A stretch of 64,000 bases of DNA from Bugula neritina. Lineage: Eukaryota; Animalia; Bryozoa. Position 1 is the stretch's first letter; the number at the start of each line of letters is the position of its first letter. The position numbers and the translations under genes were made by a program. The notes under the pieces are model-generated. The model had not been told where the DNA came from and searched no databases. It was given only the letters and a program-made list of their open reading frames with translations. The stretch spans positions 277,751-341,750 of the forward strand of contig OZ037773.1 in the NCBI GenBank assembly GCA_964035545.1. Direction: 5' to 3'. Below, in pieces: positions 20,731 to 41,982 of this stretch.

Positions 20731-23071
20731 ATACTAAAGGAAGTATAGAAAAGAATAGGGACAAGCTTGCAAACTGTAATTTTATAACATATAATGAGTG
20801 TTGAATGACTGTAATAGATATCACCTAGTCTGACTTTTCACATATGATTTTAGTGCGGCTGCCTGGCCACACAACATGAATAAAGTCACTATCCTCCTCA
20901 ACTTGTGGCTTTAGAGCTTAGACCATTAGCAAATATATTTTGCTCTATGGGCTGTTTACGGGTTTCTCATTAAATTACTAACTGCTGAATGGTGACGCTC
21001 CAACAATAGAATTTAGGCTGTAGCAGAGCTGTGGCTTTTTCTTTTTCATGTTAGTGAATTGTATTTAAAGATCTTCAAATAACATGTGGCCCTTTTCTCT
21101 ACTCTAGTTTTTTTAAAACAAACTTCCTAGTATTTTTCTGCATCACATGATTTTCCCTAAACTTCCTACATGTGAGCCAACAACAGTGTTTAGTTTAGTA
21201 ACCATGCTAACTGTTGCAGCTATTATAGTAGCCATAGTGACTGTTGCAGCTAGTAGCCATGGTAACTGTTGCAGCTAGAAATTATAGCTTCAAGCAACTG
21301 AATAACAGGCCTTTACCTATAGAAGACGACTAAAGTACAAAGTCTACTGAATTATGCAATGAAAGGTAATTATAGGTACTTACACTAGATACTTATCAAA
21401 GACAAGCTTACTGCACTCAGCTTTACTATGTTACTAAAGCAAACAATAAGCATAACTTCTAAGAGTTGAAGTCAAGTCTAAGAGAAGCTGAATATGTGAT
21501 CACGGTTTTACACTAAAAATCAAAATGGGTTTCGAGGGACCACTATAATAATTTTAGGATTTTGCCAATATGTATTTTTTCAAGGCTAGCACAATTAGTG
21601 AAGAAGCAGTTTTTGACCAATAATGCCTAAAAAATAGGCAGTTTTTTGAGCTTATAACAGAATAAAAATTGGAGCAAAATCAAGTCTAAAAAAGCTAAAA
21701 AAAGCATGAGAAGATACACAAGATGTTTTTTAAATTTCGTTTTTAGTCTACATATTGTTGTAAATTAAAATTACTAAGATGAGAATTCAGTAGAACCAAT
21801 GCCTAAACATTATCTCTTTGCAATTATGGGAGAGGAGGGCATAAAAGTTGTCCATCAATCAGAGCGTATTCTAGGCTTGCTATGTCAAGAACTCAAGCCT
21901 AGCTCTTCACAATTGGTAAAGAAAAATGTATGTAATGAGTATTAAATACAGAAGCGTGAATCCAAATGCAACGCGTCACTGCAATTCATCTGATTTATCC
22001 GCAGCTTCCGGTCCCATTTTGGAATGTTGTTTCCTGTTGCGGGGCCAACACTCCCCACTGCAGCCGAGCCGGGAAAGGCGGGAATATCTGTCGCGCCATA
22101 TGGATTGCATCATCCTTGCAGTTAGTCAGTAGGCAGTGCACTTGTGTGCGCATCACACTTGTTGAGTGTAAGAACAAGAAGATAGTTTATCTCCATGCAG
22201 CTACTGTACTAATGAAGGGTCACAGGCTAAGTTCCTGGCCATAATATAGTCAATAGAGAACAGAATATGCACTTGCTAATTATAATAGTAAAACGGTCAG
22301 ACTGAATACGTGTACAGTAGACTTGCACATAAGTAGGGAGAGTCATAAGCTAAGCTGGGGGAAGCATGATGTATTGTGATAGTTTTGTGGATTGTGAATG
22401 AAACTAGTGCTGTTACATGCTTGTATGAGAAACAAGGCGAGAAATAAGGTAAAAGGTAGATAATCTTTATTGTAGTATAGTCCGAGTGAATCAATGGTCT
22501 TTATCCAGCGAGCTCCAGTAGTAGACTGAACTATACTGGAACTCGCTGGCTTTTATATACATGCAGGACAAAGACATTCCTTTGTTTGCCGAGATCGGAG
22601 GCCCGAAATACCGAATATCGGTACTTCGGGAATCCGAAATGCCGAATCCGGCATTTCGGTACTTCGGTATTCCGATATGCCGAGAATCGGCATATCGGTG
22701 TTTCGGAGGACCGAAGTACCGATCTCGGTAACAAAGGACACACACACACAACATAATTTTACCACACACACCCCCCATCGGAAAGCATGCTTTCCGATAA
22801 AGAGGCGTACACAACACAAACACACAACAGGGAATGACACGACAATAAAACACACAGTTGAAAGTAACACACAGAAAAAAAATATGGTAAACATGCAGTG
22901 ATAGTAATAATACAATGATAGCAACAAAAAAAAACAGGGAAGATTTGTGCACACGCAAGAAAAACAGAGCATGAATAGGTACATGCATTACATGAAGAAC
23001 TTACACATATATAATAAACAAACAAAGAATAAGAGTAGAAAAAAAAAAAAAAAAAAACTATACAAATAGTC

Positions 23072-29931: not shown

Positions 29932-30640
29932 CCTATTTCTCTTAGCAACTAGCTATTCGTAGAATCCCACCGCTGCCACCAATGTGATAGTTTTGTGGAT
30001 TGTGAATGAAACTAGTGCTGTTACATGCTTGTATGAGAAACAAGGCGAGAAATAAGGTAAAAGGTAGATAATCTTTATTGTAGTATAGTCCGAGTGAATC
30101 AATGGTCTTTATCCAGCGAGCTCCAGTAGTAGACTGAACTATACTGGAACTCGCTGGCTTTTATATACATGCAGGACAAAGACATTCCTTTGTTTGCCGA
30201 GATCGGAGGCCCGAAATACCGAATATCGGTACTTCGGGAATCCGAAATGCCGAATCCGGCATTTCGGTACTTCGGTATTCCGATATGCCGAGAATCGGCA
30301 TATCGGTGTTTCGGAGGACCGAAGTACCGATCTCGGTAACAAAGGACACACACACACAACATAATTTTACCACAGTATGCCCAAAGTCATTACAATATTT
30401 TTTGTTTTTACTTGAGGAGTATTTCAAATATATCAACAATAGAGAAAGTGTGTAATGTGCATGCAGTTATGTAACCTGTTTTATAAATATTAATATAGTT
30501 GTGCTTTGTTCCTTTGTGTTCTAAATCTCTTTATCCTTGTTGTTTGTATATATTGTCAGTTTTAGATATGTGTTCGTAGTGATCAGTTGTGCTTTCCAAA
30601 TAAAGATATTTTAGTGAACTTTAAGTATAATACTATTACA

Positions 30641-30652
30641 AGCTATTTCGGC
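30641..30652 (+). promoter_or_regulatory. Primer-binding site complementary to nt 1-12 of tRNA-Phe(GAA)
   Basis: AGCTATTTCGGC directly abuts the 5' LTR. Its reverse complement GCCGAAATAGCT is the 5' end of vertebrate and insect tRNA-Phe (recalled sequence). Confidence 0.75.
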
Positions 30653-30671
30653 ATTTATCAGTGGTAAAAAT

Positions 30672-31415
30672 ATGGCAGTCAGGGTGTCGGATCTAGTGAA
30701 AAATTATGAGGACAGTTCAGTTAGTGGAGACTTTACTGAGTGGTGTGAGAAGCTGGAGCTAGTAGCAAAGTTGCAGAAAGTAGAAGATCTTGCATCGTTC
30801 CTGCCATTATTCTTGGCAGGTCCAGCATTTGCTGTGTATAAACAGTTTTCAGAGGATGTTAAATCAGACTTTCCAACGTTAAAGGCTGAGCTGATGACGT
30901 CATTTTGCGAGAGCAGTTACAGCGCTTATGATCAACTTAGATCAAGAAGTCTAAAAGAAGGTGAAGCTGTAGATGTCTATGTGGCTGACTTGAGAAGGCT
31001 AGTAACACTAATAGGTCAGAAAACTCCTGAGCCTTTATTGAAATGTGCATTTATTGCTGGTTTGCCAGTGGATGTTGCTACACAAATAAAATCCTTAGAA
31101 GAATTGGTTGATAGAGCTAGAGTAATGTTATCAACAGCAACTGTAGACACTTTGACACCCTGTGCTGTTGGTAGGAATGTTACTAGAAAGTGTTTTAAAT
31201 GTTTTTCACCACACCATTCAGCTTGGAACTGTAACACTGAGAAAAGTCAAAATGGGAACATGAATGCTAATCGAAATGCCAATAATCATCAGCAGTACAG
31301 AAGATGGAGCGTTCAGTGCTATACCTGTCAGGCTTGGGGGCATATTAGTAGGAATTGCCCACAGGGAAACGGCGCTGGGGCAGTGTCAGCACCGGATGCT
31401 CACCCCAACAACTAA
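30672..31415 (+). CDS. gag: Gag of element C with two CCHC knuckles
   Basis: CFKCFSPHHSAWNC and CYTCQAWGHISRNC. Confidence 0.9.
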   Translation: MAVRVSDLVKNYEDSSVSGDFTEWCEKLELVAKLQKVEDLASFLPLFLAGPAFAVYKQFSEDVKSDFPTLKAELMTSFCESSYSAYDQLRSRSLKEGEAVDVYVADLRRLVTLIGQKTPEPLLKCAFIAGLPVDVATQIKSLEELVDRARVMLSTATVDTLTPCAVGRNVTRKCFKCFSPHHSAWNCNTEKSQNGNMNANRNANNHQQYRRWSVQCYTCQAWGHISRNCPQGNGAGAVSAPDAHPNN

Positions 31416-34390
31416 ATTGCAATTCGGTGCTACCACTAATAACTTTAAATGTAAACAGTGTGAGCATAAAAGCACTAGTAGATAGTGGTTGTGAACAATC
31501 AGTAGTGTTAGAAAGATTTTGTAATCAAATAGGTGTTGCACCATGTGGTCCTGAACGGAGGATTTTAATGCTAAATGGACAAATAACTAAATGTAGGGGT
31601 GAAGCTCAATTAGCAGTGCAGGTTAGAAATCGTCGTCTCTCTGTAAAATGTTTAATAGCTCCAATGTTAGTAGGTGGTTGCTCTTTAATTTTGGGAATGG
31701 ATGCTATTAGCAAATTAGGTGGTGTGACAATTACTAGAAATAAGCAAGTGATGTTTCCTGCAGTTGAACCAACAACAGAAGTAGGTAAAGTTAGTGCTGT
31801 TAGTGTAGGCGTAGGAGTAGATAGATTTGATAAGACATTAACTAGTGATAGTAAAAGTGAACTTTTTGTTAGTGACATTGACTTTAATGCTAAATTTGAT
31901 GGTAAAAAATGGACAGTGAGGTGGAAATGGGAAAATGGTGAGCCGATATTACAGAATCAATGTGGTCAGTATGCTGTAAAAGACAAATTCAAACAGAGTT
32001 ACCATGAGCAGATTCAGCAATGGATTAATGATGGATGGCTACAATTGTATGACAATAAATTGCATGGTACAGTCACTGGAATTGTACCATTGATGGCTGC
32101 TGCCCAGCCAAATAAACCAACCCAGGTCCGACCTGTTATGGATTATAGTAGAGAACTCAACAAATACATCTACAGTAAGCCCAGTGGTGACACTGCCATT
32201 TGTCAGGATAAATTGAGGAAATGGAGGTTACTTGATGACAATGCCAGTTTGCTAGATCTAAGAAAAGCTTACTTACAACTTCATGTGGATAGTGATTTGC
32301 AAAAGTTCCAAGCTGTACGGTATGAGGGTAAGATCTATGTAATGACTAGGTTAGGTTTTGGTTTAAATGTGGCGCCTAAAATCATGTCAAAAGTTTTATC
32401 TACAGTCCTGGCTCAAGATGACACTATACGCAAAGGTACTGATAGTTATATAGATGACATTATAGTTGATGAGACTGTTGTTTCGGTAGAAGTAGTTCGA
32501 AATCATTTGTTGAAGTTTGGTTTGGTAACTAAAGAACCAGAGAAACTGAGTAATGCTAGAGTTTTAGGGCTAAGGGTTAGAGAGGGGTGGAGAGGTGGCA
32601 TGTCATGTTATAGCTGGCAGCGTGATGGTGAGCTCCCATCTCTTGAGTCAAATAGCAACATAAGCAAGCGAGAGCTGTTTTCGGTGTGTGGTAAACTGAC
32701 TGGACATTTTCCTGTAGCAGGGTGGCTTAGGGTAGCATGCAGTTTTATGAAAAGGTTAACACAATCAGATATGTGGGATAGTGCTGTGTCTGACCACGTC
32801 CAAAAAATGTTGTTAGAGACATTAGATAGAGTTGCAAAATCTGATCCTGTGAAAGGAAAGTGGCATGTGGCTAATACTGATACAGGCACTGTATGGTGTG
32901 ATGCAAGCAGTTTGGCAATAGGGGTGTCTGTGCAAATAGATGGCCAGATAGTGGAAGATGCTTCGTGGATGAGAAAACCCGATGATTGCACCCACATTAA
33001 TGTAGCAGAGTTAGAAGCTGTGGTAAAAGGCCTAAACCTGGCTTTAAAATGGAATCTATGCAACATTGTAGTGAAAACCGATTCAATGTCAGTATTCAGG
33101 TGGGTCACATCTGTAATCAATGATAGTGTCAGACCAAAAGTTAATGGCATGAATGAGATGATTGTGAAACGTAGGTTAGGTGTTATAGCAGAACTGATAG
33201 AAGAGTACAAGCTGTCATTAAAAATACATTTAGTGAAATCAGCTGAGAATTGGGCGGATGCTCTGACACGGGTGAGCTCAGCATGGCTTAGTAAGCGAAT
33301 AACCTGTGCAAGTGCAGGTGTGACAACTCCTGATGTAGCTCACCTGAAGGATGAAATAGCCAAGCTGCATGGAATGCATCATTTGGGCATTGAAAGAACA
33401 TTTTATTTAGCTAAATGTAAATTCGGAGGAGGCATAGACAAGGAGTCAGTTGAAAGAGTAGTCAAGGAATGTGCTGTGTGTAGGAGTATTGATCCTTCTC
33501 CAGTGCAGTGGGAAAGAGGAGTTCTGGAGGTCAATGAGAATTGGTATAGGCTGGCAATGGATGTGAGTCATTATAATCGTGTACCATACTTGACTATTAT
33601 CGACTGTGGCCCAAGTAGATTCGCTGTGTGGATAAAGTTGCAGAATGAGACTGCTGACTCTGTGGTAAATCAGCTACTAAAGGTGTTTCAGCAACGTGGT
33701 CCACCAACAGAGTTACTGTCAGACAACGGACCATGTTTCAGAAGTGACAGATTGAAACAGCTACTTAGGCAATGGGATGTACAGCACATATTTAGCTGTG
33801 CTTATAGAGCATCTGGGAATGGTGTCATAGAGCGCAATCACAGGACTATAAAAAGAATGGCAGCTCGAACTAGATCTTCAATAGAAAATATGGTATTTTG
33901 GTACAACAACACCCCAAATAGTAACAATGTAGTACCCTCACAAAGTTTATACAGTTATGATGTAAAGCTGCCTAAAGTATCACCATCAACAATAGGCAAG
34001 CCCACAGACATTACAAAAAACCCCTACAATGTAGGAGACAAAGTTTATGTAAAACCTGTGAATTCTAAATGCACAACTGCATGGCCACAGGGCATGATTA
34101 CCAGGGTTGTGTCAAACACTGCGGTGATGGTAGATGGTATGACACGACATATAAGTGATGTCCGACTGGCTAATGCAGGGAACAGGGAAAGTGGTGACGT
34201 TTCATCCAGTACAAAACAACAATCTCAGGTACATAGAGACATTGAAATTAACCTGAGCCTAGATAATGCTGATGAGGATGCAGATGCAAATAGAGTTGTG
34301 GATGGTGAAAGTGTAGACGAAGTGATTGATCGACCAGTAAGAGATAGACGGCCACCTAGGTGGTTAGCAGACTTTTATGTAGATGACTAA
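31364..34390 (+). CDS. pol: Pol of element C (about 1000 aa); -1 frameshift at GGGAAAC
   Basis: LVDSGC protease, YIDD RT, WCDAS..INVAELEAV..TDS..ADALTR RNase H, HHLG..CAVC and MD/SDNG/IER integrase motifs. ORF uninterrupted. Confidence 0.92.
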   Translation, partial: GKRRWGSVSTGCSPQQLNCNSVLPLITLNVNSVSIKALVDSGCEQSVVLERFCNQIGVAPCGPERRILMLNGQITKCRGEAQLAVQVRNRRLSVKCLIAPMLVGGCSLILGMDAISKLGGVTITRNKQVMFPAVEPTTEVGKVSAVSVGVGVDRFDKTLTSDSKSELFVSDIDFNAKFDGKKWTVRWKWENGEPILQNQCGQYAVKDKFKQSYHEQIQQWINDGWLQLYDNKLHGTVTGIVPLMAAAQPNKPTQVRPVMDYSRELNKYIYSKPSGDTAICQDKLRKWRLLDDNASLLDLRKAYLQLHVDSDLQKFQAVRYEGKIYVMTRLGFGLNVAPKIMSKVLSTVLAQDDTIRKGTDSYIDDIIVDETVVSVEVVRNHLLKFGLVTKEPEKLSNARVLGLRVREGWRGGMSCYSWQRDGELPSLESNSNISKRELFSVCGKLTGHFPVAGWLRVACSFMKRLTQSDMWDSAVSDHVQKMLLETLDRVAKSDPVKGKWHVANTDTGTVWCDASSLAIGVSVQIDGQIVEDASWMRKPDDCTHINVAELEAVVKGLNLALKWNLCNIVVKTDSMSVFRWVTSVINDSVRPKVNGMNEMIVKRRLGVIAELIEEYKLSLKIHLVKSAENWADALTRVSSAWLSKRITCASAGVTTPDVAHLKDEIAKLHGMHHLGIERTFYLAKCKFGGGIDKESVERVVKECAVCRSIDPSPVQWERGVLEVNENWYRLAMDVSHYNRVPYLTIIDCGPSRFAVWIKLQNETADSVVNQLLKVFQQRGPPTELLSDNGPCFRSDRLKQLLRQWDVQHIFSCAYRASGNGVIERNHRTIKRMAARTRSSIENMVFWYNNTPNSNNVVPSQSLYSYDVKLPKVSPSTIGKPTDITKNPYNVGDKVYVKPVNSKCTTAWPQGMITRVVSNTAVMVDGMTRHISDVRLANAGNRESGDVSSSTKQQSQVHRDIEINLSLDNADEDADANRVVDGESVDEVIDRPVRDRRPPRWLADFYVDD

Positions 34391-36269
34391 ACGTTTTTTT
34401 CTTTTTGTTTTATTATATATCTGTTTGATCTGATAAGATCAGGGGGAAATGTAATGTGCATGACATTGCATCATGCAGTTGTGTAACCGTTTTGTAAATA
34501 TTATTATAGCTGTTGTGTGGTTTTCCTTTATGTCCTAAATTCCTTCATCTTTGTGGTTTATATAATATATGTTGTCTGTCTTAGAAATGTGTTCGTAGTG
34601 ATTAGTTGTGCTTTCAAAATAAAGATATTTCAGTGAACTTTAAGTATAATACTATTACACATGTTATGTATTTGTATACAGAATTAAAGCAATGCGACTC
34701 ACCTACAAGGTTTGTGACAAACCTAAACACACCATCAATTCCAAAAAGAAAGTTTTCAACTATGACAAACTCCTCTGACGTGAGGGTAGTTACTGCAAAA
34801 GAACAGGAAAGCTACCAAAACATAATTACAGTATCATCAGCCATAAATAACATGAGGTTAAAGATGCACATGAAAGAATTTGCTTATAAGAACTTACTAA
34901 TTGCCATATTAGTTGCAGATGTTGTATTTGCAGAGCTGAGCACCTCCATGTTTCAGTGATGAGAACAAAATGAATGCAGAGAATGTGGAGATAACAACAG
35001 TAATATCGCAGTTCGACATATTTCAGGCACGTATATAGGCAGGACATTGCCCACTACCAGCAATTAGGATGATGAATGTGGTTAGAAATCTCATTCTAAT
35101 CGTTATTATTCATATCTGCTGCAATATATATTTTGCACGCTAGCATAGTTTATATGGTTAGTCTGACGTGTCTGGAAAAGTTGAGTATCATGTCACCATT
35201 ACATATTGCCAGTGGAGATGGATGGACACCTGGTTCTCTCGGAGTATAACCAACACTTCCACATCCTGTGTATTCATTCACTAAATGCTCAAACTCGCTA
35301 ATTTGAAAGGCAAAGTTTGCTCTCCCAAGAAGTGAAAGATCATTGGATACTTTAGTAGGCTTACCTGTAACAGGATGTCATCAGAAACCTTGTAAGATAT
35401 GTGTATAGGCTGGTGTATAGGCTATTTGATATTTAGTTTATTGCCACACATCTAGTACATATATACATGTATGTGCTGGTGACATAACAAAAATTTGTAA
35501 TCATGTAATAAGATATAATAACAAAGCATTCTACTCAATTATAATGGCAAATAGTAACACAAAACATTGTTTAAAACCACTATACAGCTGTAAGTTTGAG
35601 CATAAGACAGAGAACAGCGAGAGTGAACTTTTAACAAAGAAAGCAGTACTTAGTAATATTGACTAAATTGATACAGGCAATATTGTTAAATGTACTTACA
35701 AATTATTAACCAAATCCTGATGTAACAGCTTACATAATAGTTATTCTGTTAAAAGTTTCAGTGATGCATATATGTATGTATGTAAAATTTAGAATACAGT
35801 ACAAACACAAGGTGCTCCTAGTAGGGCTGCTAGAAGCTTACTAAATATGTTTACGAAATTGTTAGTTACAGAAATGTATTAATGTGGGTTTACAAAGGTT
35901 GTTTGTTTGATGAAAAATTGCTTGATTATTGCCAGTGTCGGTGTATCTCATTATAGTGGTAGGTTACAAGCTAGTATGTTGGGTCAATGCCATCCTAGTA
36001 CAGTACCTCACTCAGTGTCTTCAAGTATGTTGTAAGATTTTGTCTAACAGCTAGAACATAAGCTTATCAAAAATGACAGTTTACTATTAACATCTTTTGA
36101 AGCAGCATGGCTATAAATTTCATTCTATATCATTTGGTTTGAGAATACTGTGACAAGCACCAATAAAACTTCATCTGTGGAATCACTAGTTTATTTGCCA
36201 GTATGAAAATAAGATGCTACAGTGTAATATATAGAAGTCAAGAGTATTAATATATAACTGTGTATTCAA

Positions 36270-41982
<5,713 letters not shown>

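Follow-up and report, generated by a model that had tools for sequence, protein, structure and literature searches.

A 12-nucleotide sequence directly behind the 5′ LTR of a compact Bugula neritina retrotransposon is complementary to the 5′ end of host tRNA-Phe and is a candidate primer binding site

Primer choice and primer use by LTR retroelements are a textbook part of reverse transcription. The 3′-OH of the primer abuts U5, and the PBS copy carried by the plus strand is templated by the primer RNA (PMC5371799, PMC4600332). The analyzed stretch of 64,000 nucleotides of B. neritina DNA (the window) contains a retrotransposon, element C, whose 5′ LTR is followed by a 12-mer complementary to the first 12 nucleotides of a host tRNA. 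This raises the question of which RNA primes minus-strand synthesis of this element and by which of its ends.

The limits of element C were derived from a direct repeat (30547-30640 versus 34566-34659), which end alignment extended to two full LTRs, both of the form TGTAATG...ATTACA. The identity of the two LTRs stops exactly behind ATTACA, at 30640 for the 5′ LTR and at 34659 for the 3′ LTR. The plus strand at the junction (30630-30674) reads ...ATACTATTACA / AGCTATTTCGGC / ATTTATCAGTGGTAAAAAT / ATG, the last triplet being the start codon of gag. The preliminary description had let the 5′ LTR end in ATTACA with the 12-mer following without a gap, on which the LTR alignment and the genomic copies agree. 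It had also seen no TGG-type PBS beside the LTR, and this was borne out by the junction sequence and by the relatives described below: no such site adjoins the 5′ LTR, and the sole TGG of the 19-nt leader is unconserved in the relatives. In these relatives the gag ATG lies 0-26 nt behind the 12-mer, so that there is no space for another, canonical TGG PBS.

Table 1. Features of element C in window coordinates.
Feature	Position	Strand	Basis or remark
Target-site duplication, left half (AAGTG)	30446..30450	+	differs from right flank
5′ LTR, 190 bp (TGTAAT...ATTACA)	30451..30640	+	LTR-LTR alignment and genomic copies
TATA-like sequence TATAAATA	30482-30489		inside 5′ LTR
AATAAA	30599-30604		inside 5′ LTR
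Putative PBS AGCTATTTCGGC	30641..30652	+	complement of host tRNA-Phe(GAA) nt 1-12
Leader, 19 nt, PBS to gag ATG	30653..30671	+	unconserved among relatives
gag ORF, 247 aa	30672..31415	+	weak Retrotrans_gag match
Putative -1 frameshift site G_GGA_AAC	31364..31370	+	in register with gag frame
pol ORF, 1011 aa, -1 frame	31355..34390	+	Pfam, PDB profiles, structure model
Polypurine tract AGGGGGAAA	34441..34449	+	abuts 3′ LTR
3′ LTR, 210 bp	34450..34659	+	subfamily differs from that of 5′ LTR
Target-site duplication, right half (CATGT)	34660..34664	+	partner at 5′ LTR of inverted copy

Element C is a compact LTR retrotransposon of 4.2 kb with gag, a -1 frameshift and a pol gene of the order PR-RT-RNase H-IN (Table 1). 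Within the 5′ LTR, the TATA-like sequence TATAAATA is the putative promoter and AATAAA the putative poly(A) signal. Gag contains one CCHC zinc knuckle recognized by Pfam and a second one found by direct reading of the sequence. Pol comprises an aspartic protease, RT, a thumb (DUF7047), a cellular-type RNase H, and an integrase with H2C2 and rve domains. The heptamer G_GGA_AAC is located 52 nt upstream of the gag stop codon, and its position in register with the gag frame fits -1 frameshifting. Of 18 relatives, 16 have an in-frame slippery heptamer (GGGAAAC, AAAAAAC, GGGAAAA or GGGAAAT) near the end of gag. Element C has no ORF, and hence no env gene, between pol and its 3′ LTR.

The two LTRs of element C share 167 matching positions, with 22 mismatches and 22 gap positions, corresponding to about 88% identity over aligned bases. 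This low value and the lack of a matching target duplication are due to an inversion of about 83 kb. An inverted copy (L126, contig C9:391050-395290) lies about 83 kb from element C. Whereas element C shows the order AAGTG, 190-bp LTR, 210-bp LTR, CATGT, the copy shows CATGT, 210-bp LTR, 190-bp LTR, AAGTG, and is thus the reciprocal chimera of element C. Such an arrangement is what recombination between two copies in opposite orientation leaves behind.

With respect to its classification, element C is a member of a widespread lineage characterized by the Pfam domain DUF7047. All 20 members of the clade analyzed with Pfam contained PR, RVT_1, DUF7047, RNase_H (PF00075) or RVT_3, and rve, and 12 of them H2C2. 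In these 20 members there was no match to the gypsy-type domains RT_RNaseH (PF17917) and RT_RNaseH_2 (PF17919), nor to the BEL/Pao domains Peptidase_A17, DUF1758 and DUF5641. Features of Ty1/copia were likewise absent, the integrase being C-terminal and the RT matching RVT_1 rather than RVT_2. The order PR-RT-RH-IN is that of Ty3/gypsy elements (Metaviridae). In an AlphaFold model of the RT-RNase H region (mean pLDDT 87), DUF7047 (pol residues 438-495, window about 32666-32839) is predicted to be a three-helix RT thumb that runs directly into RNase H, without a retroviral connection or tether domain. The best structural matches by Foldseek were the RTs of HIV-1, foamy virus, MLV and cauliflower mosaic virus. 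The integrase was nearest by sequence profile to the integrases of MMTV, RSV and HTLV and to that of Ty3, and PDB profile scores were similar for retroviral and Ty3 proteins. LTRs with TG...CA ends, 5-bp duplications in nine sibling copies and in two complete relatives (L161 and L162, see below), the gag knuckle, a full pol gene and a polypurine tract mark these elements as integrase-bearing LTR retrotransposons (order Ortervirales). We filed element C as an LTR retrotransposon with a Ty3/gypsy-like gene order, at a level above the families Metaviridae, Belpaoviridae and Retroviridae.

The 12-mer was compared with the tRNA genes of the host. A pattern search of the 216-Mb assembly revealed five loci starting with GCCGAAATAGCTCAGTTGG, and ARAGORN identified all five as tRNA-Phe(GAA) genes that are identical to each other. 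Their first 12 bases, GCCGAAATAGCT, are the exact reverse complement of AGCTATTTCGGC. The first base of the 12-mer pairs with U12 and the last one with G1, so that the paired region covers the acceptor stem on its 5′ side, U8 and A9, and three bases at the start of the D-stem. The preliminary description had given the tRNA-Phe 5′ end of vertebrates and insects as GCCGAAAUAGCU, and this held for five out of five host genes. Its claim that the match spans tRNA nt 12 at the LTR edge to exactly nt 1 proved true for every element with the same 12-mer (TTC type, see below), where the match always runs from the LTR edge to nt 1 and never extends to nt 13. The match to a host tRNA-Phe was seen for the TTC type only, directly in this genome and via published probe sequences for insect and human. 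The host tRNA-Phe gene is presumably identical to the human one. A second conserved box complementary to tRNA-Phe, as in a bipartite PBS of the Ty1 or Ty3 type, was absent among the relatives, and other matches to this tRNA were only scattered 8-10-mers at unconserved places. One sequence, AGATCTTC, recurs near the gag start, where it forms part of the coding region and probably reflects a conserved gag peptide.

The host genome contains about 40 sequences that match the LTR-gag segment, and the element C family accounts for about 20 5′ ends. Conservation of the 12-mer in family copies and in distant relatives from other hosts, on which the preliminary description had staked its proposal, was evident on both levels. 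Every copy of the 5′ LTR has ATTACA followed by the 12-mer, including subfamilies that are only 80-89% identical. Single changes within the 12-mer occur in decayed old copies, A to G in L008 and C to T in L022. The 3′ and solo LTRs diverge directly behind ATTACA, and in total about 30 genomic copies show this LTR edge. Of the 11 full copies, nine are flanked by perfect 5-bp target duplications, and their two LTRs, 205-211 bp long, differ by 0-2 mismatches; in all 11 the PBS is present and the polypurine tract AGGGGGAAA identical. The near-identical LTRs, the target duplications and the PBS together indicate that the family has transposed recently with the 12-mer site. Logan contigs from sequencing runs labelled or guessed to be RNA span the whole element with 95-99% identity; their loose ends at 30641 run into unrelated sequence, so that they may equally stem from DNA or read-through.

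The 14-mer composed of the terminal CA and the PBS, CAAGCTATTTCGGC, is present in 103 copies in the 216-Mb genome, for which the chance expectation is about 1.6 (2 x 216e6 / 4^14), and the reversed control sequence was found 0 times. As 103 sites are opposed to about 20 5′ ends of the element C family, the host genome probably harbors other families that use this PBS.

Relatives in other organisms were gathered by Pol similarity, and the 12-mer was not used as a criterion. Hundreds of Pol homologues with 40-58% identity were obtained, mostly on metagenome or Logan contigs of about 4 kb; the named sources were the bryozoan Watersipora subatra and the leafhopper Macrosteles quadrilineatus. On many of these contigs of about 4 kb, the relative consists of just one unit and one LTR. 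In about 45 distinct junctions from elements with 38-58% Pol identity and unrelated LTRs, the LTR end (usually ...ACA) is followed by AGCTAT-NNN-GGC. Among 83 loci, all those that include an LTR-leader junction carry this type of 12-mer, and those without it are fragments, such as a copy truncated within the site (L062) or a contig ending within the LTR (L054). In L037, which has 55% identity and an unrelated LTR, the 5′ LTR ends with GCTACA followed by AGCTATTTCGGC, and the 3′ LTR has the same end and then diverges. The leafhopper element (L039) reads ...AATTACA / AGCTATTTCGGC / ATA ATG. Upstream of a partial gene model from Watersipora (L163), no PBS was detected. In three metagenome contigs (L042, L050, L056), the LTR, PBS and gag start repeat behind the 3′ LTR, reflecting either tandem elements that share an LTR or a circular assembly path.

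The variable triplet, which pairs with tRNA nt 4-6, was TTC, CAC, CGC, CTA, CCC or ATC, for example CTA in L056 and L063, CGC in L053 and CAC in L047; rare variants also occur at the last three bases of the 12-mer. The bases facing A7 U8 A9 G10 C11 U12 are constant and those facing G1 C2 C3 nearly constant, where the columns of positions 1-6 do not count as independent evidence, as the junctions in the conservation table were chosen by a pattern fixing them; an earlier junction search had tolerated any two mismatches. At position +13, as well as upstream of the terminal TACA of the LTR, conservation is no higher than background. The corresponding form of the partner RNA is GCC-NNN-AUAGCU with variable acceptor-stem bases 4-6, and variation confined to this triplet is the pattern that would be expected of tRNA 5′ ends. 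Variant sites were not restricted to fragments. L161 (CCC), which lies on a 753-kb contig, and L162 (ATC) are complete insertions with a 5-bp duplication, a polypurine tract, TG...CA ends and a 12-mer abutting the LTR. Their LTRs are 100% and 99.6% identical, respectively, and in L162 the gag ATG follows directly after the 12-mer. Examples of assemblies with variant sites are ENA ERZ25067901, which includes the 753-kb contig (AGCTATCCCGGC), and ERZ26052287 (AGCTATATCGGC). A full-text search with the variant 12-mers gave no useful literature match.

In a Pol tree obtained by a quick maximum-likelihood search, the triplet type switches repeatedly, with at least four changes for TTC. The site therefore tracks something other than the descent of the elements, most simply the host tRNA. 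The related loci themselves contained no tRNA genes. The genome pattern search in the host revealed tRNA-like 5′ ends that include GCCGGGATAGCT and GCCCGGATAGCT, and variant PBS types might pair with tRNAs other than tRNA-Phe.

Based on these data, we consider it likely that the 12-mer is the minus-strand PBS and that its partner is the 5′-terminal 12 nt of a host tRNA, namely tRNA-Phe(GAA) in the case of element C. The anatomy of the element, the match, its conservation, the lack of a self-primer and the recent activity of the family lead us to infer that the RNA of a tRNA 5′ end serves as primer. Several other explanations have to be weighed against this reading.

The 12-mer might have a function other than priming, as a signal for packaging or dimerization, as an element by which a tRNA or a 5′ tRF controls gag translation, or as a target of silencing. 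Being located 0-26 nt upstream of the gag ATG, a paired tRNA could affect initiation, and 3′ tRFs are known to target PBS sequences (PMC7472051). However, a site kept merely as a silencing target would be selected against. Moreover, LTR elements need a start for the minus strand just 3′ of U5, where the 12-mer is the sole conserved sequence, and it adjoins the CA end defined by integrase exactly as the geometry of priming requires. A purely non-priming role is therefore unlikely.

Alternatively, priming might occur from another small RNA that ends with ...GCCGAAAUAGCU-3′, such as a tRNA-derived SINE, a pre-tRNA fragment or another host RNA. Sequences resembling tRNA 5′ ends are indeed numerous in the genome and probably represent repeats; GACACAATAGCTCAG, for instance, occurs at dozens of sites, and the molecule used is not distinguishable by sequence alone. 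Against this explanation, all TTC-type matches stop exactly at nt 1 of the mature tRNA, and the site can be followed by any base (A, C, T or G), as fits the 5′ end of a mature tRNA. In addition, the bryozoan-like host and the leafhopper use one and the same 12-mer; they have tRNA-Phe in common but no SINEs. We regard such a primer as quite improbable.

The preliminary description had named ordinary self-priming as the reading that would overturn its proposal. In a Tf1-like mechanism, the 5′ end of the transcript would fold onto the 12-mer and the match to tRNA-Phe would be coincidental. The 12-mer indeed has the length and position of the PBS of Tf1 and Tj1, which comprises 11 nt directly behind the LTR (PMC4600332). 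However, the LTR of element C lacks GCCGAAAT and holds no complement of the 12-mer. In 44 loci, the best complement to the element's own PBS within the 450 nt upstream reached 7-9 of 12 positions, compared to a mean of 7.7 and a maximum of 10-11 for shuffled sequences. The constancy of AUAGCU and GCC in the partner RNA across unrelated LTRs also fits a tRNA and not co-evolving LTRs. Since the LTR complements are at shuffle level, self-priming was rejected as very improbable.

Chance resemblance or a functionless hitch-hiking sequence, for which only the shortness of the 12-mer speaks, has a negligible probability, being refuted by the 14-mer counts (103 versus 0 in the control) and by an architecture that is kept at 38-58% Pol identity with unrelated LTRs.

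If the 5′ end of tRNA-Phe primes minus-strand synthesis, extension into U5 needs a 3′-OH at nt 12. The tRNA would therefore have to be cut between nt 12 and 13, within the D-stem, or a ready-made 12-nt 5′ fragment would have to be recruited. Minus-strand strong-stop DNA would then be made from the nt-12 end, and plus-strand strong-stop synthesis would copy the 12-nt RNA and run off at the 5′ end of this RNA, thereby remaking the 12-nt PBS for the second strand transfer. Run-off copying at the 5′ end of the primer would explain why the complementarity ends exactly at tRNA nt 1. As the plus strand would copy the primer RNA, the PBS could be reset to the host tRNA in each cycle.

The usual tRF-5a class has a length of 14-16 nt, and a 12-nt fragment ending at U12 is shorter, which counts against the model. 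Tf1 obtains an 11-nt primer when RNase H cleaves an RNA duplex and thereby releases the 5′ end of the element's own transcript (PMC5371799, PMC4600332). We favor the element's own RNase H, acting on a 12-bp RNA duplex as that of Tf1 does on 11 bp, as the possible source of the cut, because the length and geometry of the duplex are near-identical to those in Tf1 and the 12-nt length is fixed across hosts. A host nuclease as the source of the 12-nt fragment would be equally compatible with the sequence data. The broadest reading extends priming by tRNA nt 1-12, with the element's own RNase H cutting the host tRNA in trans and the PBS being rewritten in each cycle, to a widespread lineage whose members occur in insects, in bryozoan-like hosts and in many unidentified metagenome eukaryotes. 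We consider this possible and give it slightly less than even credence.

A tRNA 5′-end primer would have features in common with several known systems. As in Tf1, Tj1 and the sushi group, a short PBS is located directly behind the 5′ LTR (11 nt there and 12 nt here), the primer would be the 5′-terminal stretch of an RNA that has to be released by a cut at the duplex end, run-off to the 5′ end of this RNA would remake the PBS, and the order of pol is PR-RT-RH-IN (PMC4600332, PMC5371799). In contrast to Tf1 and Tj1, which use their own transcript, element C would use a host tRNA and has no complement in its LTR. Furthermore, its Pol lacks the RT_RNaseH matches of Ty3/gypsy, and a cut by RNase H is only deduced for element C.

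In copia and Ty5, the half-tRNA primer is about 39 nt long and generated by a cut in the anticodon arm. These elements resemble the situation proposed here in that a host tRNA is cut internally and primes with its 5′ part, not with the CCA end (PMC5371799). They differ in that they pair with the anticodon arm of initiator tRNA-Met, whereas element C would pair with nt 1-12 of tRNA-Phe and require a cut in the D-stem, and in that their integrase precedes the RT instead of following it. Canonical 3′-end priming, as found in retroviruses, Ty1, Ty3, most Ty3/gypsy elements and BEL/Pao, likewise uses a host tRNA and a PBS beside U5. The PBS length of element C is within the known range of 8-18 nt, and its LTRs, polypurine tract, target duplication and gag-pol frameshift are ordinary. 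Unlike in canonical elements, TGG is absent, the opposite end of the tRNA would be used, the PBS is not bipartite, and no m1A58-type stop would be needed to define the plus-strand PBS copy. Skipper of dictyostelids has a polypyrimidine tract in place of a PBS, and unconventional priming was proposed for it (PMC5006619). Like element C, it belongs to an LTR lineage without a TGG PBS and without a self-primer in the LTR (PMC5006619), but its tract is degenerate and has no identified partner RNA, whereas the partner of the 12-mer can be identified to the base.

Reviews list priming by the tRNA 3′ end, half-tRNA priming and self-priming only (PMC5371799). In a search of open-access full text, no paper was found to describe a PBS that pairs with the 5′ end of a tRNA, and there the 12-mer occurred only as a northern probe for tRNA-Phe. 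A possible precedent is Candida Tca3, for which a review remarks on a 'distinct mechanism'; the primary paper on Tca3/Tcd3 is Goodwin et al. 2003, Yeast 20:493. If the proposed mechanism is correct, it would add a fourth to the known ways in which LTR elements prime their minus strand, and the PBS copy would be defined without a modified-base stop. Retrotransposition would also be tied to tRNA 5′ fragments or to the action of a retroelement RNase H on a host tRNA. Current annotation tools check tRNA 3′ ends only, so that a site for the 5′ end is invisible to them, and such sites would account for a class of LTR elements annotated 'without a PBS'. Being recently active, as judged from identical LTRs, and compact with 4.2 kb, the family is workable for studies of particles, cDNA and enzymes.

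Element C starts only about 75 nt behind the 3′ LTR of another LTR element, element B, whose LTRs (22375-22770 and 29983-30376) are 100% identical. There is no TGG behind the 5′ LTR of element B, where the sequence reads CACACCCCCCATCGG..., and about 140 nt of its LTR (30200-30340) are rich in CCGAAAT/ATTTCGG inverted repeats. Further downstream, the window contains tandem repeats (37849-38008, 40770-40911 and 41291-41563), in which an 18-nt unit forms two arrays separated by about 2.9 kb and a further repeat has a 28/34-nt unit.
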